Positions 42,853 to 64,000 of a stretch of 64,000 nucleotides of DNA are shown piece by piece. The translations under genes were made by a program, and so were the position numbers. A model generated the notes under the pieces. That model had not been told where the DNA came from. It ran no database searches and saw only the letters and a list, made by a program, of their open reading frames with translations. The stretch's first letter is position 1. Each line of letters starts with the position of its first letter. This DNA is from Penicillus capitatus (Eukaryota; Plantae; Chlorophyta), in the NCBI GenBank assembly GCA_965649825.1, contig OZ287716.1, forward strand, positions 17,678 to 81,677, in the 5' to 3' direction.

Positions 42853-43658
42853 TTAAGCTAAACTTTGCGCAATGGCTGTTCCATTACTCAATAAGTACTT
42901 GTTCTTCGACATCGTCTTTTTCTGAAAGAGTTCCCACTCAGTGTTTCGCGACACATGTGGCGTTGGTGCCCGAGTGGTAATGAAGTTTGCATACTTCGAT
43001 ATAAACTGCTCCTGGCAGTAACTTTCGACAGCGGACCGGCAGCGAAGCTTTCGAACTTTTGAAATAGCATCTGTCGGAGATGTAGCCATCTTTAATTTCA
43101 ATAGCAGACACGAGGCAATCAATCCCGCCCTCCCTACGCCGCCACGACAATGAATGATCATGACCTCTCCATCGGACAACCTATCGTCACCACACATATT
43201 TGACCGAGAATGCATTGGGGTGAACGAAAGGGCGACTTTGATTGCACGAGCTCGATGAATGCTGCCGCCTTCTTTAATGAATCCGGTGCAGCCATTTCGA
43301 CAATCGGGAAAGACAGGAATTGAATGCCTTTCGACCGAACGCCTTGTTCATAGTTTCGCAGCTTCAGACTCGCGAGTTCAGCTTGACTGAGGAGGCAGAG
43401 AATTGTGGTAACGCCGAAATTCGTTTTGAGTCGCTCTAAATCCATTTCCAGACTGCGTGACCAGCGCACTCCGCGACGACAGACAGTTTTTCCAGGGCAG
43501 AAAGTCAAACCAAATCGACCACCCGAACTGCTTTTCGCCACCCAACTGACGTTCATGGGATGCGTCTCTGATGTCCGCACAGGGGATGAGGGTGTCGGCG
43601 TTGCCGTCATATCCACGGGCGTTCTCCGCGCATTGCATGGAGGCGCGAACGTCACCAT
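42853..43658 (-). CDS. CDKN3-like dual-specificity/tyrosine phosphatase
   Basis: GLTFCPGK, RSLEMDLERL, FPIVEMAAP and an intact CX5R signature HCRGGVGRAG. Confidence 0.85.
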
Positions 43659-44441
43659 CTGTCTGGGGGGCGTTAAAGAAGGAGTGGTGTTTTAAATAAC
43701 GCAGAGCAAAAATTGGGAAACGTTTGTGGTATCAAAGAGTCGCTGCGCTCAAAATGTGGCATGTAAGCGAAATCATCGACGTACGTCGCGATCGTCGTTC
43801 GTTCATTTCAGTGGACATCGATTTCTCCGCACAGATTCTGATGGATCCAAGATCCGTCCGCATTTGACGAAAACGTCAGAGATCATGAACACCACAGAAA
43901 ATGAACATGACGACAGCTGTCAGGCAGAAATGCCACGAGAGGCATTCGGAGAGGATAATACTCGACCGCTTACCATTGTGTGGTCGCCGTTGCTCGATGG
44001 ACAGAGTCCGGGAAGGAACCAATGGTTCGGCTAAATGACACGAGCTTCGTTCGCTGCGATGCTCTGTGACTTCCGTTCATCCATGGACACATGATGCTGC
44101 GTGTCAACAACGACCACTTTGAGTGGACCTATCACGTCGGTCTTGAAGTCAAATGGCTCTTCGGCGTTCAGATGCATCTATCATATGTCGCTCACATATG
44201 AAGACAGCCATAGAATGCGCTCTTTCTCCTGTCATCGCAAGAAGGGCTTTACTCTGTCCAAGCGAACAGCGAATGCAAACAATGCAGCGGTGAAGAAGCT
44301 GGGGGTCTCCCGTCGAATGCCTCCAAAACCGTCATCGCGGTTGTGTAGCGTGTTGTGGTCGTGGGTGCGTTCGCCGAGTACGCTGCTTTTTCTGCTCTTT
44401 CATTTCCGTCCCTCCGGCACGTTTGAACATCAATTATTTAA

Positions 44442-44948
44442 ATGCAACTTCGAAGACGTGGAAATCGTGGAGGTCGTGCTGGAGGACGTCCAATTAGAGA
44501 AAAGGCAACGACAACGGTAGCGAACAGACGTCCGACCTTCTCGCCGTATCGTTCAAGAGGCACGCGCGGTGGTCGAGGGAGAGGCATTGTTTCGCGCGAA
44601 CGTCCTTCAACAACTGGCAGAGGGACCCCCGTCAAACGCCCATTCGCATCGAAAACGGGCTTCGTTTCTGCACGAGGCCGCGGCCGTGGACGTGTGCCCT
44701 TTGCTGGACGTGGTATTGATAAAAGACGTGGCCGAGGACGCAGCCGTGGTCGTGGTCGGACTGACACATCCAGACAAGCCATCGCCCAAAAGAAAGGCCT
44801 CAGTGGTGCTCAGTTGGATAAAGACCTGGAAGAGTATTTCAAATCCGATCCCGAATTCTCGGAGAGAAAGTTAGATACCGAAATGGAAGAGTATTGGTCG
44901 CATCGTCCGGCAGATGAAGAAGGGGCGATGGACGCCGACGCCGCTTAA
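44442..44948 (+). CDS. RGG-rich RNA-binding protein with C-terminal FoP/CHTOP-like duplicated motif
   Basis: RG/RGG-rich body, then LSGAQLDKDLEEYF and KLDTEMEEYW. Confidence 0.75.
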   Translation: MQLRRRGNRGGRAGGRPIREKATTTVANRRPTFSPYRSRGTRGGRGRGIVSRERPSTTGRGTPVKRPFASKTGFVSARGRGRGRVPFAGRGIDKRRGRGRSRGRGRTDTSRQAIAQKKGLSGAQLDKDLEEYFKSDPEFSERKLDTEMEEYWSHRPADEEGAMDADAA

Positions 44949-45010
44949 TGCTGTCTGTCTGTCATCTTGTGTTAATTGGATCTGCGTGGATTTAAAAGAA
45001 CCATCGCACT

Positions 45011-47121
45011 ATGCTGCCCACCGAGGAAGACGTGAAGCGCCGTCGCGTTGCGGAAAACTGGAGTCTGCGACGACGCCAAGCCAAACTGCATGCCGAATTC
45101 GAATTTCTCAGCCGCGAAGTAGGCGCTCCCTATCGCCGCCGTTTTCGACCGGTGCGTGTTACAGTGCGTTCAGCTTTGTCACAAACGCTTTCTCAAACCG
45201 TCCATCGATTCGATCGAACTCTCCGAGATCGAAGAGAAGTTCTTGAAGGACTTGAAGGAACGCAAGCTGAAAGAGGTGGTTACGAAACAGTGCCTCAGCG
45301 TCATTAAGTTTCTCATGAGCCAAAAGGTAAGAGACATCCATGGCTGAGCGCGTGCAGGTGATGATCCATGATGCATCGTGCAGTTGCTGTCGTATCCGTT
45401 CAACGAACCGGTAGATACCATCATGTACAGAGATTATCTAAACTATGTCCGGACGCCCATGGACTTTGGAACTATCAAAGGAAACATTTCCCAGTACAAG
45501 AATCCGACAGAGTTCGAAGCGGATGTGCGGTTGGTCTTTGATAACGCAAGGAAGTACAATGCCCCGGGGACAGATGTCAGAGAGATGGCACGTGCATTGG
45601 AGGCAAAATTCGAAGAGAAGTGGACGAAATCCGTTGTGCCTCGACTGGAGGAATTAAAAGTCAATGAGATCGAAGATCAGATCGCTTTTAAACAAAGCAA
45701 AGCTGACAATTCAACGATGGAGGCCGAGACAAGAGTCGACGAATGTTGTCGCCTGCTGCTGAATCGACTCCAGGTCCTGTTGTCTTTTATCCTGATGACA
45801 ATGATCTTAGAGATCTGATTGCGATATCTAGGTACTGTCCGAGGAATTAAAGTCGGTTCAGTGCCTGGCAGCAGCTCAATGTGTCACTTTGCCCGAGGAT
45901 GAACGATTGCGATTGGGATGGGAATTGACGACGTTGGCGCCAGAGCAGTTCCAACACGCTGTGAATTTAGTTCTGATGCGACATCCAGGATTGGTGGCGA
46001 CCATGCGAGATAACACAATCGAATTTGACATCAACAAAATGGATTGTCTTACTTTGAGGCAGCTGCAAGACTACATCCATGACTGCTCAAAAGAGAAGAG
46101 CAGGGCAGAGGAACGTGGTGGTCCGCTGGAAACGCCGCCCGTCAGAAAACGTCGTCGACGCTGGCCGTCGCCTTCACGTACACACATCTGCCTTTTCACA
46201 CGATCTCTATCTCACGACCTTCCGCAGGACATGTGGACGAAGGTGTCGATCCGTACTGGCCTGTCGAAGGACAAGGCGTTCACTGGCCAAAGGTCGCACT
46301 CGGTAATGGTCTGAAGCCCTACGATGCAGAAGTGGAACCATTCATTCCACCCAGTGCAGAAGAACCTCTGTCTCTACCCTTCTCGTCTGTTTTTATGCAT
46401 CATCAGCAAAACCTGCAGCGTGAATCCGATACCCCTCCTGAAAACTCTCCGGTACACATTCAAGTAGAAGACTCTGCGCTGTCTTCGCCGCCTTCGACAG
46501 CGGTCTCCACCAACCAGATCCCGATATTTCTTCCTTTGCCCCGCTCACCGAGGGATGCAGAGACGAATGCGTTTTACGGTGGAGATACTGCTGGTCTATC
46601 CGAAATCGTTTTGCCCCCACCCTATTCTGTTCTGTCGATGTTGCCTCCGCAGAGCACAGATCTTATGTATCAACAGCAGACATTGCCTGCAACACAAGAG
46701 GCCGTTTTGCAACCGATGTCCAACACGCCTTGTCTCAGTGGTAGGTCACATCTCACTTATGTTTGTAAGATTTTTGTCCTCTTTAGTTTCGGACATATCT
46801 CCTCCCACTGTGTTGGTCCCAACCGCTGGATTGGCGGCCATTCCGTTGGTTCCGGTATCTCAGCCGACGAGTCAGTTCCCTCCTTTCTTCACGGCAAATA
46901 TTCGGCCGCCATTTGCAGCGCCGTTGAATCCGAGTGCTCCCCTTCCTATATCACCACCTGAGTCTCCTGCCGTTGGACCTGCATCCCATCCATTCATTGC
47001 CGGTTTTCCTCCTTCCCCTATTCCAGAGCCTACAGCTACACTAGAGGCTTTCACTGCTCCAATTTCATCCACTGCGACAACAATACCAGTCACATCAAGC
47101 GGAGATATTCAACTGGGATAA
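45011..47121 (+). CDS. BET/GTE-type bromodomain plus extra-terminal (NET) domain protein
   Basis: PFNEPVD..DYLNYVRTPMDFGTIK..DVRLVFDNARKYN (bromodomain), ERLRLGWEL..IEFDINKMDCLTLRQL (ET domain) and a Pro-rich tail. Confidence 0.9.
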
Positions 47122-47409
47122 GGAGCTTAAAAGTTGAACATTGTACATAAAAGGAACGTTCGATAGAGGCATAAAGCATGTTCTTTGTTTTCGTTTAAAA
47201 TTCAAAGTTATAATCCAAACATGAGCTATCCACACGAAAAAATTCATCAAGCGTCGCACTACGGTCGGCGCTACGAATGGCAACAGAAAAAATTACACGT
47301 CCCTAAAACGCAACACCGATCGCCGAAAATTCTCAGATCTCTGCCAGCGTCACGGACGTCATCCGAGCAATCGAGATCTCACCGTGAAGCCCCAGGCTTC
47401 CAATCAGAA

Positions 47410-49560
47410 ACAGACGTCAGGTAAGACGCCCATGACTGCCTTCGATCGCTGTGAAGGCATCCAGTAGCAGCAGGAGATAGAGTAGGACGCCGCCACGACG
47501 GCCTCCAGTGGCCGAGAAGGCATCCAGTGGAGGCATGAGATAGGGTAGGATGCCCACGACGGCCTTTGCGCCGCCGCCAGACGTCAGATAGGACGCCGCC
47601 GCTGTGGCCTTCAATCGTTGTGAAGGCATCCAGCAGCAGAAGATAGAGTAGGACGCCCATGACGGCCTTTGCGCCGCCGCCAGACGTCAGATAGGACGCC
47701 GCCACGACAGACTCGAACGGCCGAGAAGGCATCCAGTAGCAGCAGGAGATAGAGTAGGACGCCGCCACGACCGATTCGAGTGGCCGAGAAGGCATCCAGT
47801 AGCAGCAGGAGATAGAGTAGGATGCCCATGACGGCCTTTGCGCCGCCGCCAGACGTCAGATAGGACGCCGCCCCTGCGGCCTTCAATCGCTGTGAAGGCA
47901 TCCAGTAGCAGCAGGAGATAGAGTAGGACGCCCATGACGGCCTTTGCGCCGCCACCAGAGGTCAGATAGGACGCCGCCGCCGCGGCCTTCAATCGCTGTG
48001 AAGGCATCCAGTAGCAGCAGGAGATAGAGTAGGACGCCCATGACGGCCTTTGCGCCGCCGCCAGAGGTCAGGTAGGACGCCGCCACGATAGACTCGAACG
48101 GCCGAGAAGGCATCCAGTAGCAGCAAGAGATAGAGGAGGACGCCGCCACGACGGCCTCCAGTGGCCGAGAAGGCATCCAGTAGAGGCAGGAGATAAAGTA
48201 GGATGCCCATGACGGCCTTTGCGCCGCCGCCAGAGGTCAGGTAGGACGCCGCCACGATAGACTCGAACGGCCGAGAAGGCATCCAGTAGCAGCAAGAGAT
48301 AGAGGAGGACGCCGCCACGACGGCCTCCAGTGGCCGAGAAGGCATCCAGTAGAGGCAGGAGATAAAGTAGGATGCCCATGACGGCTTCTCTTAGCCGCCA
48401 CCAGAGGTGAAATAGGACGCCGCCACGACGGCCTTCGGTCGCTGTGAAGGCATCCAGTAGAGGCAGGAGATAAAGTAGGATGCCCATGACGGCCTTTGCG
48501 CCGCCGCCAGAGGTCAGATAGGACGCCGCCACGACAGACTCGAGTGGCCGAGAAGGCATCTAGTAGCAGCAGAAGATAGAGTAGAATGCCCATGACGGCC
48601 TTTGCGCCGCCGCCAGAGGTCAGTTTGGACGCCGCCGCCAGAGGTCAGGTTGGACGCCGCCGCCGCGGCCTTCAATCGCTGTGAAGGCATCCAGTAGCAG
48701 CAAGAGATAGAGTAGGATGCCCATGACGGCCTTTGCGCCGCCACCAGAGGTCAGATAGGACGCCGCCGCCGCGGCCTTCAATCGCTGTGAAGGCATCTAG
48801 TAGCAGCAGAAGATAGAGTAGGATGCCCATGACGGCCTTTGCGCCGCCGCCAGAGGTCAGGTAGGACGCCGCCACGATAGACTCGAACGGCCGAGAAGGC
48901 ATCCAGTAGCAGCAAGAGATAGAGGAGGAGGCCGCCACGACGGCCTCCAGTGGCCGAGAAGGCATCCAGTAGAGGCAGGAGATAAAGTAGGATGCCCATG
49001 ACGGCTTCTCTTAGCCGCCACCAGAGGTGAAATAGGACGCCGCCACGACGGCCTTCGGTCGCTGTGAAGGCATCCAGTAGAGGCAGGAGATAAAGTAGGA
49101 TGCCCATGACGGCCTTTGCGCCGCCGCCAGAGGTCAGATAGGACACCGCCACGACAGACTCGAGTGGCCGAGAAGGCATCTAGTAGCAGCAGAAGATAGA
49201 GTAGGATGCCCATGACGGCCTTTGCGCCGCCGCCAGAGGTCAGGTTGGACGCCGCCGCCAGAGGTCAGGTTGGACGCCGCCGCCGCGGCCTTCAATCGCT
49301 GTGAAGGCATCTAGTAGCAGCAGAAGATAGAGTAGGACGCCCACGACGGCCTTTGCACCGCCTCCAATAGTCAGGTAGGACGCCGCCACGACGGCCTCCA
49401 GTGGGCGACAAGGCATCCAGTAGCAGCGGAGATAGAGTAGGACGCCCACGACGGCCTTTGCGCCGCCGCCAGACGTCAGGTAGGACGCCGCCACGACGGC
49501 CTCCAGTGGCCGACAAGGCATCCAGTAGCAGCAGGTGATAGAGTAGGACGCCCATGAGGG
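47410..49560. repeat. GC-rich minisatellite array A1, built from alternating ~45-nt and ~60-63-nt monomers
   Basis: Recurrent GGCCTTTGCGCCGCCGCCAGA(C/G)GTCAG(A/G)TAGGACGCC and GAAGGCATCCAGTAGCAGCAGGAGATAGAGTAGGA(C/T)GCC. Unit lengths are not multiples of 3, so reading frames shift. Confidence 0.95.
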
Positions 49561-49619
49561 CCTCCAATGTCGGCACAAGCAGTAAGTTGAACTTCCATGA
49601 TGTAATTTTCTCTCTAATC

Positions 49620-49985
49620 ACATTGTGACCATAATCAGACAGGCGATCCAGGTCGGTCTCCACAGCCTCAGCAGCAGTATGATCATCAGACAGGTCATCC
49701 AGGTCGATCTCCACAGCCTCAGCAGCAGTATGATCATCAGACAGGTCATCCAGGTCGGTCTCCACAGCCTCAGCAGCAGTATGATCATCAGACAGGTCAT
49801 CCAGGTCGGTCTCCACAGCCTCAGCAGCAGTATGATCATCAGACAGGTCATCCAGGTCGGTCTCCACAGCCTCAGCTTCAGCAACACATCAGACAGGTCA
49901 TCCAGGTCGGTCTCGACAGCCTCAGCTTCAGCAACATCATCAGACAGGTCATCCAGGTCAGTCTCGATAGCCTCAGCAGCAGCAA
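49620..49985. repeat. 51-nt tandem array B1 (degenerate copies continue to about 50250)
   Basis: Unit TCAGACAGGTCATCCAGGTCGGTCTCCACAGCCTCAGCAGCAGTATGATCA in about 4-5 near-identical copies, followed by diverged copies. Confidence 0.95.
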
Positions 49986-50608
49986 GACATCATGCAGGTA
50001 ATCCAAATCGGCCTCCGGCCTCCAATAACAGACAAACAGCACATAGATCATCCATAACAGCTCTAGCCTCAAATCGCAACAAAACGGCAGACAGATCATC
50101 CATGTGGGCCCTAGCGTCCGACAGCAGCAAGACATCATGCAGGTAATCCAAGTCGGCCTCCAATCACCGCCAGACATCGGGAGAAAACTCGCAGCCTTCT
50201 TACAGCAAAACGGCAGATTTAACACAGCCTCCAATATAAAACACAGCAAATGAGATTCCTACATTCTCCAGGCAAAAAAACAGCCAACACAGAGCCAACC
50301 ACAACAAAGCGGAGGTGGTATGGCAGAGAAACATCTAAGAACGAAAACAGCCCCTTTGCAGATTTTTGTTTTTTTTTATTTTTTTAGTCACACTTTTTAG
50401 AGTGTGACTTTCTTTATTTCTTTTTTTCTTTATTTTTCTCACACAGAAAAAGTGTGAGATGAGAGAAGAGAAGAAAATTTTTTGTGTTTTTTGTTTTTTT
50501 TCTCGCACAGAAAAAGTGTGAGATGAGACAAGAGAAGAATTTTTTGTGTTTTTTGTGATTTTTATGCCCACAAGAAAACAGATTGAAACCCCCACAGAGA
50601 CCTGGCCC

Positions 50609-51867
50609 CTATTCATGCCAATTCTGGACAGAAACCTACATAAAAAGCAAAGCATAAGAGTGACTAAAAAAGAGTTCGACTTACGCATTGTCCCGACATG
50701 AAGAACATGCGTTGCGGGATCACTGGCGGGCAGATTGCAACGCACTGGCCGGACATAAAATAGGGACGGGGATGGAATCCAGGTGGGCTGACTGAAAAGA
50801 TGAACGGACGGTGAGGGATCGGAGGTGGTTGATTCAGGGAAAAAACCGATGTCCGCACGGGGAAGGGAGGTGGACGTGCAGGTAGGGAGAAACGTAGGGG
50901 ACGAGATGGGATTAACGGCGCAGGAGATGCAGGAATGCAGAATACCTGTGGCCGTGGGGGAAACAAAGGAGATTGGGCATTCTGAAAGGAGGGTGGGGAA
51001 AGGATGGGCTGCGGAGTGGGAGAAGGGGACCATTCCATGTTGGGCGACTGGGCAGACTGGCTGGCAGGAGGAGGTGTAGCTGACTGACTGGCTGGAGGAG
51101 GTGAAATGGAAGAAGGGCACCACTCCATGTGTGGCGGCTGTAATGCTGGCGGCTGTGGCGCCTGAGGGACAGGAGGAGGAGCAGAGAAGGCAGGCTGGCT
51201 AGATGCCGGCTGCGAGACGGGAGGAGCGGCAGGATGGTCGGAGGCTGTCGGAGCGGCAGGATGGTCGGAGGCTGTCGGAGCGGCACGCTGCGAGACCGAC
51301 GGCGGCACGGTCTGCTGGGATGAGGGCGGCGGCGATGGTGGCCGGACGGGAGGCGGCTGAGCTGCAGGCTGGCCCTCTTGGGCCAACCGCGCTTGCCTCT
51401 CCGCGATCGAGAGGACCCTAGCCCTGCGCCCGGGCCGAGGCTGTGCGCGTTGGTCCCTATTGGGACCAAAGCGCACAGGAGGGGCCCGCTCCTCGAGGAG
51501 CTGTTGGCCCCTCAGAGCGGTCGATTGGGCCTTAAGGTCCCAATACAGCCGCTCCCTCTCGGCCGGGTCAATGCCCACGAAGGCCCTAGGCGGTCGATTG
51601 CCCAGGACCTCCTCTAATGTCACCTGGGCGAAGCTAGAAAACACACAGAGGTTAGTGAACCCTAGAAGAACAGGGCGGTCGCGCGTTCACGGCAGCGCGC
51701 AACCGCCGTCGTCTGGACTGCAGTTGGACGCTTGCATGTGCACAGCAAGCGTCCAGGCTGCAGTTGAAGAGCTCGTAAGCGCGCGACTCGTTGAAGCATG
51801 GCCACAGGACTCACGGTTTGCCCGGATAGCCGTAATCAGCTTCCGTAAACATGTGTGCGTCGGCCAT
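50609..51867 (-). CDS. Orphan proline-rich protein, copy 1 (4 predicted exons)
   Basis: ATG at 51867. Predicted introns are 51718-51814, 51634-51690 (CACTAAC branch point) and 50636-50684. The product reads MADAHMFTEADYGYPGK..FAQVTLEEVLG..(Pro-rich)..FMSGQCVSVQNWHE*. A paralog lies at 63381-64000. Confidence 0.65.
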
Positions 51868-51962
51868 TGTCGTGGAAGTCGGTTGTCAGAGAGAGCAGCA
51901 AAGATCGCCAGAAGCAGCAGAGAAACCCGAAACTCGAGTGCGGAAGGCTCTGCGATGCGACC

Positions 51963-51968
51963 TTTATA
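51963..51968 (-). promoter_or_regulatory. Candidate TATA box (CCTATAAAGG) of the Pro-rich gene
   Basis: An isolated TATAAA in a very GC-rich context, about 95 nt upstream of the ATG at 51867. Confidence 0.5.
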
Positions 51969-53384
51969 GGCCGCCTCGGTTGCCGAGCGCGGCCTGCGGC
52001 TGGCGGCTGGGAACCGTGGCCGTTTGGCGGCGTTGCATGCGCCGCCGGACAAAGAATCGGCCGCCAGACCTCTAGAGAGGCAGAGTACTGTCGTCGGGAT
52101 GCGCGTCGCGAGAGGGAGAGCGCTTCCGGAAGCTTAGCGAAGTGTTTTACAGGCGAAATTCCTTACAGTTTGTCCGTGTTCTCCGCTCTGAGTGTAACGC
52201 GCATGCGTTCTCTGCGGCCGTTTCGGCGCGGATCTCCGAACGGCCAACCGCTCGAGTCAGCTCCGCGTTGCCTGAGCAGAGGAACGCGGCGGGCGTTCTC
52301 TTTTGCAGAAGCGGCAAGGACTCTACGTCTGGACGGCCGTCTGCTCCGGGCGCCTCCGTCGCAAACGCCGTCGAGAGAGCGTTTTGCGCGGTGTAACGCG
52401 AGTCGGTTCCATGAACTGTCGACGGCCCTAACTCCCTCGAGCATGGAAGGCCGAACCGAACGACGCCTTCTGCGAGAACCAGACGGCCACGGAGTCGTCG
52501 TCTCAGTTCATGCTCGCGCACAGCGTCGAGGTAGCGTTTTGGAGGACGCCGTTCGCTGCGATCGACGCAGTCGGTCGCTTTCTATGACAGCTGTGCATGA
52601 CTGCTGCTTTGTCTGCCAAGCCAGCCATTGGGACTGTTTCGAGGATCACGTGTGCGACGGCACTGTTGATCGCGGTCGGGGCCAGTTGCGATCCGATGCC
52701 ACCGCCTACCTTCTCTCCGGCGTATTCCACTGTGCAGAGCGCACCAAAGAGGCAGATTGCCACAGGAAAGGGATGGCATGCTGCTGCGTCCTCGTTCGAA
52801 TCGTCTATGCCGTTCCGTTCTAGTGTCCTGCGAGTACTGATGCTGTGGTGGCTGTGACGGAGATTGTCCGTCTTCCGTTCGGAGACCGCTTAGCGAAAAC
52901 CTCTGTAATGAAAGACGAGCATCTACCGCCGAGTGTTCTGCGCGCGGACGTTCTGGGAAGATGTCGTCAGTGCTGTCCACGTGCTCTTGGTCGGTAAGTG
53001 CACTGTGTGGAATGCATGAACGGCAGAGACTGTAGTCACACCTGCTCTTGGCTCTGCCGTTTGGACTGTGATTCGGCATTCCTCGCAGAACACCGAGATG
53101 CCTGTCGACGTCGGCGCGTTGGACCGAGACCGAGGAATGCATCCGCATAACAAAGCGTCCTCGAAACAACGGTGCGAGAGAACATACATTACGTGATGCG
53201 GCTCTGCAGACGGTAAAACGATTTCAGATGCGAGAGAGTTTGTTCGGATGCTAAAAGAATGCGACTGTCCACTCCTCGATGTTTCGGCTGGCAAATCGAG
53301 ACGAGACAGAAAGGGATGAATCCAATCGTGGATTCAGTTCCTACCTTTCACTGCATCTACGCGAGCACCCTGCACAGAGAACGG

Positions 53385-54104
53385 ATGGATCTCGATATCT
53401 TTACGAGGCCAACACCTCCTGCGCTGAGAGCACGACGATTGACCGGTGAGTAGGTAGAGAAGCGAGAGATGCAAGGACATCTGGAAAGAGCTAACGCCGA
53501 CCTCGCTGAACGCATGCCTCACTTTAAGGAATGAACAGCGAAAACGAGCACGTGGCGAGAGAGCATGCTTCGATCGTTCGAGAACTGAAAAACAATGTGC
53601 ATCCCTGTGTCTCTCGTGTCGACGAATCGCGAATAATATGGCGTGCCTGCCTGCTTGCATGATCAGATTCTACAAGAGGAACTCAGGACGCGAGAAATGG
53701 AGATACGATTCGTCGCTGTCGCGCAAGAGAGTCTCGCCATGGTTCGTGATTTACTCGACCGAGCGACGCAAGAGATCGACGTCATTGGCAACGTGATGCG
53801 ACAGACTGTCATCAATACGAGCGAGCACCTGTCCCATCACGCGATACCTGAGGGAGAGGGCTCTGTGAATCTGTTGTGTAAATGTCTTCGCTTACCGCCG
53901 ACAGGACGACTTCGTCTGTTTCTTTGGACGTTTCGTCGATCGCCTCCATCACCAATCCCGCCGAAGTGGCCAAACTGCTCAATGATGTCATCCACGAAGA
54001 AAGGACAGTCGGCGGACAGCTGGAGGAGATGCTGCAGAGGCACAACGCTTTCGAGGACATGCTTCGAAGCGTTGTCCACGAGACTGAAGAAGTATTCGAT
54101 GTGA
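53385..54104 (+). CDS. Hypothetical small coiled-coil protein upstream of, and possibly overlapping, COG4
   Basis: ATG at 53385 plus two plausible GT-AG introns lead into ORF 53643-54104 (QEELRTREMEIRFVAVAQESLAMVRDLLDRATQEI). 3' end unresolved. Confidence 0.3.
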
Positions 54105-56593
54105 CATCCGCTTCGGTGGACAGTGAGAGTGGCCCAGGTCTTGGAGGTCGTCCATGCAGATGCTGAGCAGATGCTGAACTACGTGGAGGACGCATCGCAT
54201 GTGGCAGAAGGTATCAGTCACACCGTCAAAGCACTCGACACGACACAGTCGAATGTCAAAGCTGCCCTGGATCATATCAAACTGCTGACGGATCGGTCGA
54301 GATTCTGCTACGCGGCATCCCACACTGATTACTGGTTGGTTGGTGTGCAGGAGTTCCTGTGTTCTGCGTCTGCGCGAGAGCATGGACAAAGGGGAATACG
54401 AATCTGCTGCCGAGTGCATTGCCCGATTTCGCTCGTTGGAGAACGAACTCGCTCAACCGCCTGAGACACATCAGCGACAGGTGGCGACTCCTGCATGTTC
54501 TCTCTGGGTTTTGGATCATGGGTCCCGAAGATGGTGGAGGAATCTAAGACGATCTTGCTGGATCTCGTACGCAATCTCTTGAATAAGGCTGTCCAGAAGG
54601 ATGATACCGATGCTGTCCTGCGATTCACGATGCTCTTTCTACCTTTGGAAAGACGAGAGGAGGGATGTCAGCTCTTCTCTGGATATCTCAGAACGCGAGT
54701 GGCACGAACGGGCCATGAAGCTTACCAGAAGCTCTCGGCGGCGTTAGAGTCGCGCTCGGCAGCTTCGCCCTTTGTCGGCCATCTTTCAGATCTCTTTCGT
54801 TTCGTGGCTGTCGCCGCTGACAGTCATCAACAAGTTTGGACGCCGTCATGCGTGCCATCCATACATAAGTTTCAGACGGCAGGTTTTCGTGGATGCATTT
54901 GGCAAAGATGCTGCTTTGGACACGATGCTGCACCTGCACAATGAGTGCGATGCGTACGGATGCCGTATCTTGAAGAGATTCCTGGAAGAGCGAAATCTGA
55001 CGAGGATCGTTCAAGACATCCGTCTACACAGAAAGAAAGAACTCAGTAAGTGCTTGACAAAACATCCATGCTTCTCATTCAAAGTGCTGACAACCAACAG
55101 GAGCCGTCAGTGGAGCCGCCTCCAGTCTGGATCCAAGAAACGCGGAAACCAATTTGCTTGAGATTCTGGGTCTGGTGCGGCGATGTGAGGAGTACAACGA
55201 TCTCATGACGAACAAAGTGCATGACGTTTCGCATCCACATCCTCCAACACCATCCAAGTCGGATTCAATCTCCGTGGTTCTCTCTGAATCCGACTGTCAG
55301 GCTATCCGAGCTGCGTGAGAGTCAGATCGGTTCGCTCAGTCGCGAACTGTCTGGCTATTATGTCACTCTCGAAGAGTTCTACATGGAGGAGACCGTCAAG
55401 AAGGCCATCAGCATCAACAAGCAGGTCTGTCTCGGTATCCATGCACTTGGCCGGGGCTCAGGGGTGGGTGGTGGATGGCTGTTAGATTTCTGGCGGCTTG
55501 GTGACTTCTATGGTGGACGACGTTTTCTTCATCGCCCGCAAGAGCGCCATGCGTGCCATCTCTTCGCACAATGTCCCTTGCGTCTGTGCCGTGATGTCTT
55601 TGATGAACAGCCTCTTGACGAAGGATTACTTCGCCGCGCTGCAGAAATCGAACAACAACGGACCGACCTCCTTCCTCCACGCCATCCTTTCCGATCAAGA
55701 GGTCAGCCGCACAACGCACACCGCACGCAGAATGGAATCAGGGATCGCAGGCAGGAGAGGAAGTGCAGTCGTTCAGTCTGTTTCTGAACAACTTGCGCGT
55801 TTCGTTAACATACGCGACAAAGCTGAAGTCCGAACTGGAGGCGCATATCGCAGATGCGTTCCAGATCTCGAACGAAAGGGAAATCGCATCTTCGCTCTTG
55901 GGTGCGCTTCCAGAACAACAGCATCAACGTTCAGAACGAGACGAGTGTGAATCGACAGATGATCTGGAGACGATGGTCAGTGGCCTTGAGCGTCTGCTCT
56001 CTGCCAAGAGTGGCCATCTTAGCGACGCCATGATGGCAAAGCTCATGCCAGTCTTTCAAGAGATCGCAAGCATGGACTATCAACTCAATGAGACGACGTT
56101 CGAGCAGCTCGCCGACAGCGAGACCTGGGCCCATCGCATTGTCGCCGCTGTTCGCAGCTTCTCGGCAGCTCTCGAGGCGGTGTTCGTCCCCGACAACCAC
56201 TCAGAGGTCACGCGCTCGCTTCTCCGGAAAGAGAAGAGACTCTATCGCGTTGCGCAGATCCTGAATCGCGTGCTGCAGTCATTTGTCTCCAGATGTGAAG
56301 CTTACTTCATGCAGAAGACGTTTAACCAGTTAGGAGGCCTTCAGTTCGACAAAGACATCCGACTGCTACTTTCGCACTTCTCCGAGATCTACCAGAGCTC
56401 AGTCCGAGAGAGATTCGCACGTCTGACGCAGACGGCTACCATTCTGTGCTTCGAGAGCGTGGAGGAGATGTTGGATTACTGGGGAGATGAAGGAGAGAGC
56501 ATCAATTGGCGATTGAGTCCAGCCGAAATCAAAACCATTCTTAAACTGCGCAACGATTTTAGCGAGGCCGACATCTCAGCTTTGTTGCTGTAA
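53882..56593 (+). CDS. COG4: Conserved oligomeric Golgi complex subunit 4
   Basis: AKLLNDVIHEERT, VKALDTTQSNV, YYVTLEEFYMEETVKKAI, TSMVDDVFFIARKS, FNQLGGLQFDKDIR, VRERFARLTQ and WRLSPAEIKTILKLRNDF. Confidence 0.93.
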
Positions 56594-56595
56594 GA

Positions 56596-57584
56596 ATGCT
56601 TTCTGCTCCATCCCTAGTGCCTGGCGACGACGCGAGTCGACGTCAAGAGATCGACCGAACCTTACAGCGCCTGGCGGAACTGCGAGCACAACCTGAACAG
56701 AGTATCAAGGCCTGTCGCGATGGGTGGGTGCACGCACGACAGCTGTCTCGTCCATCTAGGTCCCTGTGAATGCGGCCGGATTCTTTGAAGGTCGGGTGCT
56801 GCACGCAGAACGTGTTTTCGTCGATCTTGGCTGTCAATACGTAGCAGAGTGCTCGGCAGATCAAGCTGATGCCATTCTCACACGCAGGCGACATTCCCTG
56901 GGTTTCCCTCCCTGTCAGACTTGACGGAGATGACTTGCTCCTTGCAGAGCCACCGGAGGAAACCTGCATGTCTGAAGAAGCCGATGCGTGCCAAGCGAGT
57001 GGAGCAGCCATGCAAGCCATGTCGACTGAACGAGGTCACCGATTGCAGGCGGAGATCTCTTCTGTGCGATTGCCTTTTGCCTTCAGAGATGAAGAGTGAC
57101 ATGACAGATGATGAAATCGAATCGATGCTGGAATCGCTGGAGAGACTCGAGAAAGAGACCGAAGCCGAATCTCGGCAAGGTACTTCCACAAAGACAGTCA
57201 GGTGCTTTGACAGAGGAGTTGGTGTCCCCGATAACTAAAGCTGAAAACAAGAAGGGACTGAAGAAAGGATTCCTGCTGCCGAGACAAGAACCAAACGCTC
57301 GGCCATCTGCAAAACCGAAGGCTGTTCACTGCTCTCTCCCCGTTTCTCTCGAATCAGGGACAGCGTCGGCGACGGCGACTGAGCAAAAGGATGAACAACC
57401 CGTCTGCGTCTCGGATACGGTGCGAGAGAGGGACACGCGAACGGAGGAGATCATAGAGGACACTGGCACCGAGAAGGTAGGCATCTCCGCATCGGCCAAT
57501 GTGTAACGGCTCGAAGTTCATTAGACAGACAAGAGGATGTCACTCTTCAAGAAAAGACTGCTCGAAGGACGCCGTAATATATAG
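56596..57584 (+). CDS. URI1: URI1/Bud27-like unconventional prefoldin (alpha type)
   Basis: QSIK|VPVNAAGFFEGRVLHAERVFVDLGCQYVAECSADQADAILTRR (prefoldin alpha), an acidic middle, LKKGFL and C-terminal KRMSLFK. Confidence 0.72.
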
Positions 57585-57755
57585 TTCCTCATCTGTCATG
57601 GCTTCTCACGGACAAGAGTAAAATGCTCACGGGGAAAGGCGCACTCCGCTGCTTGGGTCTTGATAAATAAGGTTGACGACTAAAATATCGTCGGACACAA
57701 GTTGACTGGCAGAGAGCACGAAGCACAACGCTGCACAAACCTGTTCTGAAAGTAC

Positions 57756-58712
57756 ATGTTTTCGATTCGGCGATATCCAACGGTCGACCCGTCAGACGTT
57801 TCGCGTTTGGCTTCTATCTGTCTGTGGCATCTTGCGCGTCTGCATACGCAATCCAGGGAAGCACACAGTAAGCTTCTCGCGGTACCTTTGCTCGGTATCC
57901 ATTCCAACACTCAAAGATGCGTATTGGCGACAAAAAATGAGAAGCTTCTGAAGTGCGAAACTGCAAGGTAACCGCATGCGAGGCTCTTATAAACGAACGG
58001 GTGCTCTTCGTTGTAACAATGTCTGCGGCTGCTGCTTTGTGTCCTCCACCAGAAATCTCGTGACTATTACTGCGACGCTTGACTGTGCAATTACCAACAT
58101 CCTGTGCCCTTTCACCGACACCTGGCGACGCGCCGTCACCTGTCTCCGTGTTCAGAGATGTCTCTTGCGCAAGGTCTGACGCAAAAGTGTCGTGCTCTTG
58201 CCTGAGACTGCGTTCTGTCGCTGCGCAGTGATTCTACTGCTGCTGTGCGCTGTCCTTCTCGCGTCGGTTGCCGCCGGAGGGCGACTGGGTCGTCGAGCAC
58301 CACTTTCCGTCCGGACCTGGCAATGATACCATCGTGCTGCAGGCACACAGCATTCTGAAGCTCCGAAAGGAAGCCACTCCATACGTGTACACAGGTGAGG
58401 AAAGGGAGCATCTCTCATGGACGTGGAAACCACCGAATCGGTTTTTGCATTCTAGGCTACGGTGCGGGCATCTGGACCAATCCCCAGAGTCCCCTGTTCC
58501 CAGCAGACAACCCTTTGACATGCAAACTGATAGGACTCTTCAATACGGACAAATGCGTCCTGTCCGGAGCGATGTTCAATCTTGAAACGACGGCTGTGGA
58601 TGCAGCTCTCTGGATATACGACGCCGAGAAGCTGAGCGGTTCATTCACCACAAGGCATAACGGATCTGCGATGCTCACCGCACTGAGTCATCATGTTATC
58701 AATCCCCTTTGA
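57756..58712 (+). CDS. Hypothetical spliced protein
   Basis: Consecutive ORFs joined by canonical introns, e.g. CETAR|NLVT and VYT|GYGAGIWTNPQSPLF. No family recognised. Confidence 0.4.
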
Positions 58713-59444
58713 ATCCATTGCTGAGATGTGTGTCGGTTTCGTTGATCAGTTTTCATCTTGCTTCTCCATGCAGCAGCCATTACTGCTCCCTTGATATGCT
58801 TTGTTACTGCCCATCAGCTTGCCGAAAGTTGCTGACCCAGATGCATACCGACGACTGAAGCAAGGAACCGCAGTCGGTTGTCGTGCGCATCGAGTTCCTA
58901 TTCATCGATGACTGGATGAGCGAGCGTACTTTCAGCTGGCACAGTCTACGACAGCCATCTCCTGCATTTTCTAAGACTGCAAAGTTGCTCCTAACGTTGT
59001 GAACTGTACTTCATCAGGTCGATATACCTTGTCCATTCTGACGCTGTGTTTCTGATTGTTTGCATACGGAAGCCGGCACACGTACATTGAACGTTGACAT
59101 CGCACACATTACACCATACAAATATTGTAAAAGTCGACACCGTTTCAAGATTTTTTTGTTGCATTTCGACGCGAATCAGCACACACGGACTCTTCACAAG
59201 TGCAGCATCTTCAAAGCTGACCAGATCTAGAACGACAGAAAGGTCAGAGATCCGAACAACGAACAAAGGGAAGGACTCACTGTCTTCATGTCACTGAACG
59301 ATTCAACGGCATCTCCTTGGCATAGACAGCCTTCAAGCCGACAGGTACACGGGCCTTGCCTCAGAAAAGACGACCTCTGAAACGGATCTTTCGGCAGAGA
59401 AAAAAGATTTTCTTGCAGCAACACAAGCAAGATGACGTATATCC

Positions 59445-62030
59445 TCCAGCAGCCGCCAGACAAAGAAAGGGCTAGGTGCCCACGGCGGACTTCAGCGGCC
59501 GCCAGGCTGAGGGCTAGGTGCCCACGACGGCTTCTCTCAACCGCCAGATGTCAAGTAGGACGCCGCCACGACGGCCTTGAGTGGCTGAGAAAGCGTCCAG
59601 TAGCGGCAGGAGATAGAGTAGCACGCCCACGACAGCCAATGCGCCGCCGCCAGACGTCAGGTAGGACGCCGCCACGGCGGCCTCTAGTGGCCGAGAAAGC
59701 ATCCAGTAGCAGCAGGTGATAGAGTAGGACGCCCACGACGGCTTTTCTCAACCGCCAGACGTCGGGATGATCATTTCTGACGGCCTCTCTCGGCCGCCAG
59801 ACGTCGGGATGATCATTTCTGACGGCCTCTCTCGGCCGCCAGACGTCGGGATGATCATTTCTGACGGCCTCTCTCGGCCGCCAGACGTCGGGATGATCAT
59901 TTCTGACGGCCTCTCTCGGCCGCCAGACGTCGGGATGATCATTTCTGACGGCCTCCACCGGCCGCCAGACGTCGGGATGATCATTTCTGACGGCCTCCAT
60001 CGGCCGCCAGACGTCGGGATGATCATTTCTGACGGCCTCCACTGGCCGCCAGACGTCGGGATGATCATTTCTGACGGCCTCCATCGGCCGCCAGACGTCG
60101 GGATGATCATTTCTGACGGCCTCCATCGGCCGCCAGACGTCGGGATGATCATTTCTGACGGCCTCCACTGGCCGCCAGACTGAGAGCTAGGTGCCCATGG
60201 CAGACTCCAGCGGTCGCCAGACCGAGGGCTACCAGCCCACGGGGGTTCTCTCGGCCGCCAAACGTCGGGCAGAGATCTTCGCTGACGGCCTCCACTAGCC
60301 ACCAGATGTCGGGAAGTATATGGCTGACGGCCTCCAGTGGCCGCCAGACAATAGAGCTAGGAGTTCCCCACAGGGGCTTCTCTCGGCCGCCAGATGTCGA
60401 GCAGGTGCCCACGGCGGCCCCTCTCGGCCGCCAAAAGAAGAAAGGGCTAGGTTCCCACGGCGGCTTCTCTCAGCCGCCAGACGTCGGGAAGATCATTTCT
60501 GACGGCCTCCACTGGCCGCCAGACGTTGGGCTAGGAGGTGCCCACGACGGCTTCTCTCAGCCGCCAGACAATAGGGCTATAAGCCCAGGATGGCCTCTCA
60601 CGGCCGCCAGACAATAGGGCTATAAGCCCAGGATGGCCTCTCACGGCCGCCAGATGTCGGGATGATCATTTCTAACGGCCTCCCTCGGCCGCCAGATGTC
60701 AGAAAGGTCATGGCTGACGACCTCTCTCGGCCGCCAGACAAAGAAAGGGCAGGTGCCCATGGCGGCTTCTCTCAGCCGCCAGACGTCGGGAAGATCATTT
60801 CTGATGGCCTCCACTGGCCGCCAGACGTCGGGATGATCATTTCTGACGGCCTCCACTGGCCGCCAGACATAGGGCTAGGCGCCCACGACGGCTTCTCTCG
60901 GCCGCCAGACGTCGGGAAGGACATGGCTGACGGCCGCCACTGGCCGCTAGACAATAGGGCGAGGAGGTGCCCACGACGGCTTCTCTTGGCCGCCAGACGC
61001 CAGGAAGGATATGGCTGACGACCTCTCTCGGCCGCCAGATGTGGGCAGGTTATCGCTGACGGCCTCCACTGGCCGCCAGACATAGGGCTAGGCTCCCACG
61101 ACGGCTTCTCTCGGCCGCCAGATGTGGATAGGTCATAACTGACGGCCTCCACTGGCCGCCAGACATAGGGCAGAGTGCCCACGACGGCTTCTCTCGGCCG
61201 CCAGATGTGGATAGGTCATAACTGACGGCCTCCACTGGCCGCCAGACATAGGGCAGAGTGCCCACCACGGCTTCTCTCGGCCGCCAGATGTGGCTAGGTC
61301 ATAACTGACGGCCTCCACTGGCCGCCAGACATAGGGCAGAGTGCCCACCACGGCTTCTCTCGGCCGCCAGATGTGGCTAGGTCATGGCTGGCGGCCTCCA
61401 CTGGCCGCCAGACATAGGGCAGAGTGCCCACGACGGCTTCTCTCGGCCGCCAGATGTGGATAGGTCATAACTGACGGCCTCCACTGGCCGCCAGACATAG
61501 GGCAGAGTGCCCACCACGGCTTCTCTCGGCCGCCAGATGTGGCTAGGTCATGGCTGGCGGCCTCCACTGGCCGCCAGACATAGGGCAGAGTGCCCACGAC
61601 GGCTTCTCTCGGCCGCCAGATGTGGCTAGGTCATGGCTGGCGGCCTCCACTGGCCGCCAGACATAGGGCAGAGTGCCCACGACGGCTTCTCTCGGCCGCC
61701 AGATGTGGATAGGTCATAACTGACGGCCTCCACTGGCCGCCAGACAATAGGGCAGGGTGCCCACGATGGCTTCTCTCGGCCACCAGACCGAGGACTAGGC
61801 GCGCCCGCGACGGCTTCTCTCGGCCGCCAAAGGTCGGGCAGAGATCTTCGCTGACGGCCTCTCTCGGCCGCCAGACAATAGGGCTATTAGCCCACGATGG
61901 CCTCTCACGGCCTCCAGACATCGGAATGATCATTTCTGACAGCCTCCACTGGCCTCCAGACGTCAGAAAGGTCATCGCCGACAGCCTTTCTCGGCCACCA
62001 GCAAGCAAAGAGGGAAATGTCAACTGCTCC
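59445..62030. repeat. GC-rich minisatellite array A2: ~20-nt constant core plus 21-26-nt variable segments
   Basis: Core GGC(C/T)TC(T/C)(C/A)(T/C)(C/T)GGCCGCCAGA recurs every ~41-46 nt. There are ten 42-nt units at about 59750-60180 and 83-nt dimers at about 61040-61760. Confidence 0.95.
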
Positions 62031-62960
62031 ACTAGCAGCAAAGAGCGAACAGATCATCAAACACGGCCGCCAGGCCTTCAATGACAGCAAGGTAGGGAAC
62101 AGATCATCAAACACGGCCGCCAGGCCTCCAAAGACAGCAAAGAGCGAACAGATCATCAAACACGGCCGCCAGGCCTCCAAAGACAGCAAAGAGCGAACAG
62201 ATCATCAAACACGGCCGCCAGGCCTCCAAAGACAGCAAAGAGCGAACATATGATCCAGCACGGCCGCCAACCAGGCATTCAATGACAGCAAAGAGATAAA
62301 TATAATCAAGCACGGCCGCCAAGCCTTCAATGACAGCAAGGTAGGGAACAGATCATCCAGCACGGCCGCCAGGCCTTCAATGACAGCAAGGTAGGGAACA
62401 GATCATCCAGCACGGCCGCCAGGCCTTCAATGACAGCAAGGTAGGGAACAGATCATCAAACACGGCCGCCAGGCCTCCAAAGACAGCAAAGAGCGAACAG
62501 ATCATCAAACACGGCCGCCAAGCCTCCAAAGACAGCAAAGAGCGAACAGATCATCAAACACGGCCGCCAACCAGGCATTCAATGACAGCAAAGAGCGAAC
62601 AGATCATCAAACACGGCCGCCAACCAGGCATTCAATGACAGCAAAGAGCGAACATATGATCCAGCATGGCCGCCAACCAGGCCTCCAAAGACAGCAAAGA
62701 GCGAACAGATCATCAAACACGGCCGCCAACCAGGCATTCAATGACAGCAAAGAGCGAACATATGATCCAGCATGGCCGCCAACCAGGCATTCAATGACAG
62801 CAAAGAGCGAACATATGATCCAGCATGGCCGCCAACCAGGTCTCCAAAGACAGCAAAGAGCGAACATATGATCCAGCACGGCCGCCAGGTCTCCAATGAC
62901 AGCAGGGTAGGGAACAGATCATCCAGCACGGCCGCCAGGCCTCCAATGACATCCAGTAAT
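62030..62960. repeat. 49-53-nt tandem array B2
   Basis: Units such as CACGGCCGCCAGGCCTCCAAAGACAGCAAAGAGCGAACAGATCATCAAA and a GGTAGGGAAC variant, repeated across about 0.9 kb. Confidence 0.95.
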
Positions 62961-63380
62961 CTGGTAGGATATCCAGCACGGTTTCCAGCCACCAATCACA
63001 ACGAGACATCGGGTAAGACACGCCAGCCTCCGGGCGGCAAAACAGCAAGTATAGCACAGCAGCCTCCACGTCAGATGCAGCAAATAAAATTCCTACAGCC
63101 TTCAGGTAAAAAACAGTTAAAACAGAGCCACCCACAACAAAGCGGAGGTGGAATGGCAGAGAAACGCGTCGGAAAAAAGAAAACAGCCCCCTTTGCATCT
63201 TTTTTTATTTTTTTTTAATTTTTTGTTTATTATTCAGTCACACTTCAGAGTGTGACTTTTTTATTTTTATTGTTTATTTTTTTTCTCACACAAAAAAAGT
63301 GTGAGATGCTTGAGAAGAAAATAAAAATCTTTGTTTTTTTTAATTTTTATGTCTACCCCCGTGTAGACAGGTTGAAAAAA

Positions 63381-64000
63381 TTAAACAGATCTGGCCCCCC
63401 ACACGGGCCAATTCTCGATGGAAACCTACACATCAAACAAAGTATAGAAAAGACAAAGAAGGGAAATTTACTTACACACTGCCCCGACATGAAGAAGAGG
63501 CGTTCGGGGATGGCAGGCGGGCAGATTGGAACGCACTCGCCAGACATAACAAAAGGACGGGAAGGGAATCCGGATGGTTTAACAGGAAAAATAGAAGGAC
63601 GGGGAGGGATGGGAGGTGGTTGATTAAGGCAAAAAAGCGATGTCCGTATGGGGAAGGGAGGCGGACAAGCAGGGAGGGAGAAAAGTAAAGGACGCGAAGG
63701 AATTAGGGGGGGAGGAGATGCAGGAACAGAGAATACTTGAGGCCGCGGTGGAAACGGGGGAGGTTGGATTTGCGGCACAGAGGGTGGGGAAAGGATAGGT
63801 TGTGGTGGCGCAGGAGCTGGGGACCACTCCATCTGTGGCGACTGGGCAGACGGCGCGGCTGGAGGCGCAGGAGCTGGGGACCACTCCATATGTGGCGGCG
63901 GCGGCGTGGCTCCAGGCCATGAGGCTGTCGGCGGCGCGGTCGGCTGGGAGACTGGCGGCGGCGGCGGCGGGGCTCCAGAGCACGAGGCTGGCGGCGGGGC
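63381..64000 (-). CDS. Orphan proline-rich protein, copy 2 (5' part beyond the window end)
   Basis: The peptide aligns with copy 1 (MEWSP, PQPILSPPS, FPPRPQVF, LIPSRPL, NQPPPIP, FMSGQC). The last intron (63426-63475) is at the same position and is followed by VSIENW. Confidence 0.65.

Follow-up and report, generated by a model that had tools for sequence, protein, structure and literature searches.

A proline-rich gene with an attached minisatellite in Penicillus capitatus: probable member of a recombining green-algal multigene family

What kind of genetic unit keeps its layout while the repeats within it are replaced? This question is raised by a 64,000-nucleotide (nt) stretch of the green alga Penicillus capitatus (contig OZ287716.1, positions 17,678 to 81,677, assembly GCA_965649825.1), hereafter called the window. 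Regions 47.4-53.4 kb and 59.4-64 kb of the window are two copies of one unit in the same orientation, each with a spliced proline-rich gene, conserved noncoding DNA, and tandem arrays. A preliminary description, made from the sequence alone, had offered three explanations: an undescribed nonautonomous mobile element, a gene with a repeat-laden 3' region, or a chromatin or segregation element. Our analysis supports the second of these, because a coding gene with conserved flanks and a 3' minisatellite recurs at many loci. We favor the view that the module is a member of a lineage-specific, recombining green-algal multigene family with a 3' minisatellite, spread by segmental duplication, and we assign this view a probability of about 0.6. 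The object is of a conventional kind, in an uncharacterised family and with an unusually strict unit architecture.

On the minus strand, which is the gene strand, the parts follow one another in a fixed order: a conserved 5' region, a three-exon proline-rich gene, an A/T tract, a conserved block, and tandem arrays. The elements that had been listed for the two same-order, same-orientation copies were all found, about where they had been placed. The unique parts are homologous yet diverged, as claimed earlier, with 71% identity over 948 nt (E = 3e-129) between 50156-51082 of copy 1 and 62988-63876 of copy 2. We read 12 modules, namely the two in the window (c1 and c2), two each at loci L002, L005, and L009, and one each at L001, L003, L004, and L006, which were drawn from three related genomes or haplotypes. 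All 12 of the 12 modules with downstream sequence carry the gene, A-rich tract, block, and arrays in this order on one strand. The observation that the layout is kept while repeat units turn over is thus true of the whole family, and the heritable unit is about 5-8 kb in size. Among the sources of these sequences, L006 and L001 lie on a 572-kb, 41x contig of ENA assembly ERZ25074695, from a haplotype or strain about 1-3% diverged, and L009 is a 9x, 88-kb contig from a more distant relative or homeologue. A 22-kb, 16x contig of the same ENA assembly (ctg322679, locus L007) is 100.000% identical to window positions 41061-54948, and may derive from the same reads.

The gene itself carries much of the argument. 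In all 12 copies for which exon 1 is available, this exon keeps the pattern M[AST]D..M..E.DYGYP..P and a GT donor, and leads through an intron of about 164-257 nt into exon 2. A second intron of 47-51 nt, followed by a short third exon, was absent from the preliminary description. Features conserved across the paralogues include exon 1 and its donor, a GTAAG donor after GQC, and a ...TGTAG/GTTTC acceptor; intron 1 is kept in 12 copies and intron 2 in 11. Pairwise ratios of nonsynonymous to synonymous substitution rates (dN/dS) are 0.11-0.45 in the N-terminal region (106 codons) and 0.08-0.24 in the C-terminal region (112 codons). Because these ratios lie between 0.08 and 0.45, the proline-rich family genes are real, constrained protein-coding genes.

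In the 342-amino-acid (aa) product of copy 1, an 88-aa N-domain is followed by a proline-rich linker, which is hypervariable and has MEW[SC]P motifs, and then by a C-domain in which PxxPxR occurs five times. Its Pro content is 23% overall and 32% in the linker, and an AlphaFold model of the N-domain has three helices, with a predicted local distance difference test score (pLDDT) of 72. No match to the protein was found in Pfam, PDB sequences, or PDB folds, and no named homologue was found. The label "orphan" is therefore fair, and the gene is spliced, as had been described. In its Pro richness and five PxxPxR motifs, the protein is like class II SH3-ligand PxxPxR proteins, formin FH1-like tracts, and green-algal hydroxyproline-rich glycoproteins (HRGPs). 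Its resemblance to proline-rich scaffold or ligand proteins is by motif only, as there is no sequence or fold match, no signal peptide, and no Ser-Pro(n) motif of HRGPs; likewise, no transmembrane segment was found. A likeness of the N-domain to ExoX-like/DUF3820 proteins, prompted by the search match P0160, was dropped for want of Pfam support.

The noncoding 5' region upstream of exon 1 spans 0.7-2.4 kb and also belongs to the repeated unit, a part that the preliminary description had not included. It is 72-98% identical among paralogues and better conserved than intron 1, and the homology of copy 1 to one paralogue extends to 53814, into exon 1 of the neighboring COG4 gene. A second gene in this region was considered and rejected: several frames on both strands show similar tblastx conservation and contain stops, and Pfam gave no match.

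On the other side of the gene, the block of about 120 nt that had been called conserved proved to be so. Its best 58 nt (50275-50332 and 63108-63165) are 91% identical between the copies, and about 60 nt of it are GU-rich and near-invariant. Within it lies a 24-nt core, CCACCTCCGCTTTGTTGTGGTTGG, at 50295-50318 with a counterpart at 63128-63151, where no chance matches are expected. In the approximately 190 kb of window and loci scanned, the exact core pattern CCACCnnCGCTTTGTTGTGGnTGG is confined to 10 modules, with a single occurrence in each; both L009 modules have the core with one loop substitution. The core sits inside the hairpin GCCAttCCAC-12 nt-GTGGtTGGC. The hairpin sequence is invariant, and alifold analysis finds no covariation, which is neutral with respect to hairpin structure because the sequence does not vary. 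Rfam covariance models gave no match at the gathering score in the window and only chance-level matches in 49900-53500 (E = 0.7-0.9), and JGI metagenomes gave no match to the block. Two other identities for the block were rejected. A C-terminal transmembrane exon is contradicted by a 1-nt indel in a T-run and an early stop in copy 2, and a general 3'-end signal of the genome is contradicted by the presence of the block in modules only.

Between gene and block, the A-rich tract contains AAUAAA-like motifs and has a U-rich GCTGTTTTC element on either side. The palindromes that had been reported here were also recovered. TCACAC..GTGTGA occurs four times in the window, always within the two A/T tracts, against 0.1 expected; those of copy 1 are at 50388-50407 and 50439-50457. 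They are common but not universal, being absent from L003, L005a, and L009. A direct repeat, (G)GCTGTTTTC, stands on both sides of the A-rich tract in all copies (in copy 1 at 50560-50580 and 50340-50360), and it could represent poly(A)-signal elements or be what an ancient small insertion left behind. Also, a 64-nt tandem duplication (2.2 copies, 50410-50565) in the copy 1 tract doubles one palindrome, and copy 2 has a single unit.

Beyond the block, the arrays differ greatly between copies. Array A of copy 1 is made of 106-nt units (63 + 43 nt); variant units measure 169, 212, and 277 nt, and a higher-order repeat spans 620 nt. Array B consists of 7.5 units of 51 nt at 49631-50016. The distal part of copy 2 begins with relics of copy 1-type (A1) monomers at 59536-59744, and continues with a 42-nt array (59737-60240), mixed units of 42, 87, and 129 nt (60240-61017), an 83-nt array (61017-61787), and a mixed tail. 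The A1-type relics, whose survival at the left edge of copy 2 had been pointed out before, are 79-84% identical to the copy 1 unit. Array periods vary among copies from 39 to 400 nt. The first, degenerate units adjoin the conserved block and are common to several paralogues, which looks like what is expected if the center of an array is homogenised and its block-side edge is old. Array units do not match the gene exons or the rest of the window, and an origin from either was rejected.

One may ask whether the arrays are instead protein-coding repeat exons of the proline-rich gene or of another gene. Long open reading frames (ORFs) do run over arrays (780 aa in L001 and 848 aa in L002), and the 51-nt and 42-nt units read as plausible peptides. 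However, an open frame is expected by chance over a stop-free, GC-rich unit whose period is a multiple of 3, whereas periods of 106, 83, 53, 50, 85, 77, and 125 nt are not such multiples. Of the 27 dominant periods, about 10 are divisible by 3, and the orthologous window arrays have 13-46 stops in each frame. Because the periods show no preference for multiples of 3 and stops occur in every frame, the arrays are noncoding, and we discarded coding repeats as a very improbable explanation.

Despite their different units, the arrays share a short core. GGAGGCYG is found on the gene-sense strand of all 12 arrays at 1.0-8.0 per kb. The antisense strand has 0-0.4 per kb, shuffled arrays have about 0.1 per kb, and the remaining 47 kb of the window have 0.02 per kb. 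Furthermore, a second core, TGGCGGC, is common to one array subfamily, and every array is poor in A and rich in T on its sense strand. The earlier impression of different monomers with shared cores is borne out, as monomers are replaced copy by copy and GGAGGCYG remains in every array. The cores TCTGGCGG and GGAGGCYG may bear some likeness to Chi or to human minisatellite cores. We consider the strand-locked GGAGGCYG core and the hairpin to be probable functional sites, which may act in transcription termination or 3'-end formation, protein binding, or recombination.

The arrays have the marks of minisatellites: tandem units of about 10-100 nt, lengths of at least 0.5 kb, a shared core, and a length difference between haplotypes. 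In the metagenome contigs, array A beside a 99.07%-identical flank is 4.0 kb long in L006 and 2.2 kb in the window. Jeffreys-type hypervariable minisatellites are alike in their GC-rich units (here about 60% GC and 42-106 nt), arrays of 0.4-4 kb, higher-order periods, short core among differing arrays, strand-asymmetric composition, and haplotype length difference. The present arrays differ from them in being fixed in place and orientation at every family member, with the core on the sense strand only.

This strand bias bears on whether the arrays are transcribed, as a long 3' untranslated region (UTR) or as a downstream noncoding RNA that would act as a multivalent GGAGGCYG binding platform or a source of small RNAs. 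Such a role would fit a core confined to the gene-sense strand, the A-poor and T-rich sense strand, and arrays retained in the same position in a relative with about 17% divergence. However, the A-rich tract, with its AAUAAA-like motifs and U-rich elements, is a poly(A)-like region upstream of the arrays. Likewise, a 3' UTR of 3-4.5 kb would be unusual, and array length varies twofold between haplotypes. We therefore regard transcribed arrays as quite unlikely. In the family that we favor, the poly(A) site would lie in or just after the A-rich tract, which looks like a plant-type poly(A) region. With the poly(A) region placed there, the mRNA would end just before the hairpin block and arrays, which would be 3'-flanking DNA separating convergent genes. 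We infer that the arrays go back to one ancestral 3'-flank unit, about 42 nt long and made of [TCTGGCGGCC][GGAGGCCGTC] with a T-rich tail, and that unequal exchange drives their turnover. Such turnover of one ancestral unit would explain why the two window copies have the same layout and different amplified monomers.

Comparison of paralogues also indicates that family members exchange sequence. For three pairs (P0002/L006X, P0002/L002a, and L002a/L002b), synonymous divergence (dS) is 0.13-0.17 in the N-domain versus 1.1-1.4 in the C-domain. The best-matching paralogue of copy 1 changes every few hundred bases; its 5' region is 96-98% identical to three different paralogues, and its gene body has no close match. 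Module L006X, whose flank is 99.07% identical to the window, combines A1-type arrays with an array B, block, and C-domain of copy 2 type and an N-domain of copy 1 type, and has a mosaic breakpoint between array A and array B. These alignments show the paralogues to be apparent mosaics, and ectopic recombination or gene conversion would continually reshuffle the family. Between the window and L001, COG4 and a URI1-like gene are 97-99% identical, compared to 50-85% from the 5' end of the family gene onward. In such comparisons, which use metagenome contigs, the modules appear as hot spots of conversion and structural change.

Two further observations concern these haplotypes. Window positions 58270-59553, from the URI1-like gene to the copy 2 arrays, are 88.6% identical to the other haplotype, with divergence climbing toward the module. 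The 572-kb contig carries the same genes as the window in a rearranged form, with PRMT-FoP-bromodomain-module at 475-495 kb and bromodomain fragment-module-COG4-URI1-module, inverted, at 550-572 kb. This could reflect two haplotypes or strains, or a misassembly.

The mosaics raise the prospect that the arrays and hairpin are working parts of a cassette-like diversification system, in which the flanks would serve as homology or recombination-initiating tracts and gene bodies would be exchanged among paralogues. The 5' region that is 96-98% identical to several paralogues around a variable gene body, the tenfold dS difference between halves of a gene, the L006X mosaic of c1-type and c2-type segments broken between arrays A and B, the strand-locked core in all arrays, and an allelic module far more diverged than its flanks would all be accommodated. 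This reading would also explain the long retention of arrays at every copy despite unit replacement. Trypanosoma brucei VSG cassettes have 70-bp repeats and a conserved 3' element, and Plasmodium var genes have ups regions. The modules resemble these families in having a variable coding body between a conserved 5' flank and a short conserved 3' element, with an array on one side, as well as mosaic paralogues and high allelic divergence. They differ in having repeats downstream rather than upstream and in sitting among housekeeping genes, not visibly subtelomeric. Moreover, the family protein lacks a signal peptide or membrane anchor, unlike a surface antigen, and there is no evidence of switching. 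Both alignable domains have dN/dS below 1, indicating purifying selection and giving no sign of diversifying selection. Conserved flanks are equally explained by ordinary promoter and terminator constraint, and a start of recombination in the arrays would be conjectural. We consider a cassette-like system unlikely. Equally doubtful is its fullest form, in which the homogenised 5' region, hairpin, and GGAGGCYG minisatellite would shuffle proline-rich gene bodies among dozens of paralogues, perhaps between coenocyte nuclei, a kind of system not described in green algae.

How did a recombining family of this kind come to occupy so many loci? Copies have brought neighboring DNA with them. Module L005b, now beside HSP70, includes COG4 exon 1 together with all of the COG4-module intergenic DNA, and L005 17270-19151 matches window 53814-51931 at 88% over 1895 nt. 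Likewise, L001 has a 2.1-kb 3' fragment of a bromodomain gene (95.7% identical), with the intact gene at L006. The 5' limit of homology differs among copies, and the distal array edges adjoin unrelated sequence without a common terminus. The family thus combines purifying selection, variable boundaries, the inclusion of neighboring unrelated sequence, and mosaic paralogues, as expected of a dispersed multigene family spread by segmental duplication. Because pieces of flanking host genes were copied along with the modules, these alignments show that the family spread by segmental duplication, and they do not fit transposition. Variable boundaries, co-copied gene fragments, same-orientation pairs, and haplotype structure differences are all features of segmental duplication and nonallelic homologous recombination. 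The family differs from sporadic segmental duplication in that a unit of about 6 kb has been duplicated repeatedly to many loci.

Three observations at these loci can be added. The COG4 exon 1 copy at L005 17270-17420 (MEMRFFAVVQESLA...) has an in-frame stop, adjoins HSP70, and arrived with a family module. The window lacks, at the matching position, the extra module of L001 (18.5-21 kb, gene start 20309). About 1 kb of L001 (17467-18516), between the bromodomain fragment and this third module, has no match in the window.

Dispersal to many loci could also be the work of transposition, with the module as a nonautonomous mobile element that captured a gene and holds internal satellites. Many copies are indeed scattered among unrelated genes (COG4, HSP70, glycosyltransferase, NSUN2, and kinases), the noncoding ends are conserved, hairpin palindromes are present, and one haplotype has one extra copy (that of L001 at 18.5-21 kb). 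However, the searches agreed with the preliminary description in finding no transposase, reverse transcriptase, terminal inverted repeat (TIR), long terminal repeat (LTR), or target-site duplication (TSD). A TIR scan of 46900-53900 gave only a 16-nt internal pair (50380/50656) and a 17-nt, 82%-complementary pair inside the 5' region. No LTR-like direct repeats flank the unit, all direct-repeat families being array units or copy 1/copy 2 homology. No TSDs or sharp common ends were found among copies. No transposase was found by Pfam in the ORFs of the module or its flanks or in module ORFs at eight related loci, and module-locus ORFs contain no reverse transcriptase, integrase, or Rep domain. 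A processed or retroposed copy is ruled out by the conserved spliceosomal introns, both of which are kept, and the A-rich tract does not end the unit, since the block and arrays come after it.

Helitrons are marked by 5' TC and 3' CTRR ends, a subterminal hairpin, and a Rep/helicase protein. The modules have no Rep/helicase domain, their hairpins are internal rather than subterminal, and the copies have no shared ends, so termini cannot be defined. CACTA-type and Helitron-derived satellite carriers are similar in being multicopy units of several kilobases with satellites and hairpins. The present unit differs from them in lacking termini, TSDs, and transposase or Rep relatives, and in having an intron-bearing, host-type gene that is subject to purifying selection, at a position conserved across about 17% divergence. 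IMG/VR gave no match by DNA pattern or protein, and a viral origin was rejected. The idea of an undescribed nonautonomous mobile element finds no support in these results: shared termini, TIRs, and TSDs are all lacking, copies differ in how far homology reaches on the 5' side, host-gene fragments are co-copied, and the COG4 pair is in place in L009, a relative about 17% diverged. We judge a mobile element to be improbable.

The position of the pair is informative about its age. C-domain dS between the two window copies is 0.71. L009 has the arrangement module-COG4-module in the same orientation, with COG4 83% identical to the window in DNA and 85% in protein. Because of this dS value and the same layout in so diverged a genome, the pair around COG4 is an old, positionally stable duplication. 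The preliminary description had considered that this might be an old local duplication found only here. An old local pair is what we see, but the module is present at many other loci. Of the two genes reported between the copies, COG4 is confirmed by Pfam (COG4_C, E = 2e-30; COG4_N and COG4_m on the syntenic locus), whereas the URI1 assignment depends on a weak Prefoldin match on the syntenic locus. At L009 11050-11478, the arrays of the second module start about 430 nt past the conserved prefoldin-domain exon. The 2.4 kb that follow this exon in the window (57.0-59.4 kb) have no detectable counterpart in L009.

The tandem repeats might alternatively be a centromeric or segregation satellite, or an assembly artefact, although their mere presence is all that speaks for either. 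The arrays are 2-4 kb long, lie at many euchromatic intergenic sites, and are always tied to a family gene. A chromatin or segregation role for them is unlikely because they are so short and scattered between housekeeping genes. An artefact is countered by the identical ENA contig covering 41061-54948, if not built from the same reads, and by the same layout in two diverged haplotypes or genomes. We find a satellite or an artefact scarcely credible.

Several points weigh against the duplicated-family interpretation as we have framed it. First, only about a dozen copies from three related genomes underlie the analysis. Second, the retention of an 8-nt core in every array despite saturated synonymous sites exceeds what is expected of a neutral minisatellite. 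Third, the transcript 3' end is placed by sequence motifs only, and the arrays could lie in a long 3' UTR. Fourth, the haplotype structure differences come from metagenome contigs and could be misassemblies.

Family members were sought by a word-index search and an exhaustive N-domain profile search of 1.84 billion representatives. The former returned 16 relatives with 49-69% identity, all in ENA and five of them on the 572-kb contig, and the latter returned 27 matches, of which the 10 that were looked up are all in ENA assemblies. Modules on the 572-kb contig lie among housekeeping genes in three regions, at 125-146 kb, 369-390 kb, and 475-572 kb, the last including L006 (475-495 kb) and L001 (550-571 kb). 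At least five of the weaker profile matches are artefacts of repeat translation (P0151, P0155, P0157, P0160, and probably others). The source of P0151 is a 61-nt satellite that has no family member nearby and belongs to an unrelated organism with 46% GC, and this match was rejected as spurious; P0155, P0157, and P0160 were judged by eye to be repeat-amplified weak matches. Caution is warranted by locus L008, where the 61-nt satellite of the unrelated 46%-GC organism (8260-10875, 43 copies, 97% identical) reads as a 975-aa ORF that scores E = 1.6e-24 against the N-domain profile through such repeat-amplified weak matches. Our literature search found nothing on the proline-rich family or on such modules in Bryopsidales.

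These results define a previously unannotated gene family, restricted to a lineage of siphonous-type green algae, and set out the structure of its whole unit. This structure includes a family-specific, highly conserved 3' hairpin and, on a single strand of each attached minisatellite, an 8-nt motif. The module loci diverge strongly between near-identical haplotypes and are therefore useful markers. They also offer a tractable case for asking whether gene-adjacent minisatellites are passengers or promoters of gene conversion. For annotation, recognizing the unit avoids two errors: taking the arrays for ORFs, which happened with prokaryote-style gene callers on related contigs, and taking the unit for a transposon. 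The coordinates of all parts are collected in Table 1.

Table 1. Parts of the two module copies and the genes between them, in window coordinates
Feature	Position	Strand	Basis or detail
Copy 1 array A	47400..49563	-	Tandem Repeats Finder (TRF), repeat families, offset scan; stops in all six frames; noncoding
Copy 1 array B plus degenerate GGAGGCTG...TGCTG units reaching conserved block	49631..50224	-	repeat finding, alignment
Copy 1 conserved 3' block	50225..50345	-	core pattern, alignment of 9 copies, alifold hairpin
Copy 1 3' UTR / A-rich tract	50346..50608	-	palindromes, 64-nt duplication, GCTGTTTTC at both sides
Copy 1 gene, 342 aa	50609..51867	-	conserved splice sites in 9-12 paralogues, dN/dS, motif count
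Copy 1 exon 1	51867-51815	-	MADAHMFTEADYGYPGKP, then GTGAGT
Copy 1 intron 1	51814-51634	-	181 nt
Copy 1 exon 2	51633-50685	-	ending ...MSGQC, then GTAAGT
Copy 1 intron 2	50684-50636	-	49 nt
Copy 1 exon 3	50635-50609	-	VSVQNWHE, then stop
Copy 1 conserved noncoding 5' region (promoter / 5' UTR)	51868..53400	-	paralogue alignment, no coding frame
COG4 gene and prefoldin-domain exon of URI1-like gene, single copy	53700..57100	+	Pfam
Copy 2 distal arrays	59450..62001	-	TRF, repeat finder, offset scan
Copy 2 array B, 49/53-nt units, about 18 copies	62036..62951	-	TRF, repeat finder
Copy 2 conserved 3' block, core 63128-63151	63055..63165	-	alignment, pattern search
Copy 2 A-rich 3' tract, palindromes 63238-63255 and 63286-63304	63195..63380	-	pattern search
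Copy 2 gene, cut by window end	63381..64000	-	paralogue comparison
Copy 2 exon 3	63425-63381	-	VSIENWPVWGARSV, then stop
Copy 2 intron 2	63475-63426	-	
Copy 2 exon 2	from 63476 to beyond 64000	-	

Two ORFs elsewhere in the window may be mentioned. A 399-aa intronless patatin-like ORF lies at 21192-22388; its best named relatives are from Bryopsis sp. KO-2023 (55%) and Ostreobium quekettii (47-50%), with other chlorophytes next. Judged by this one protein, the source of the window is probably a Bryopsidales-like ulvophycean green alga. A 389-aa ORF on the minus strand, at 37696-38865, contains a polyglutamine run (QQMQQQQQQQQQ).

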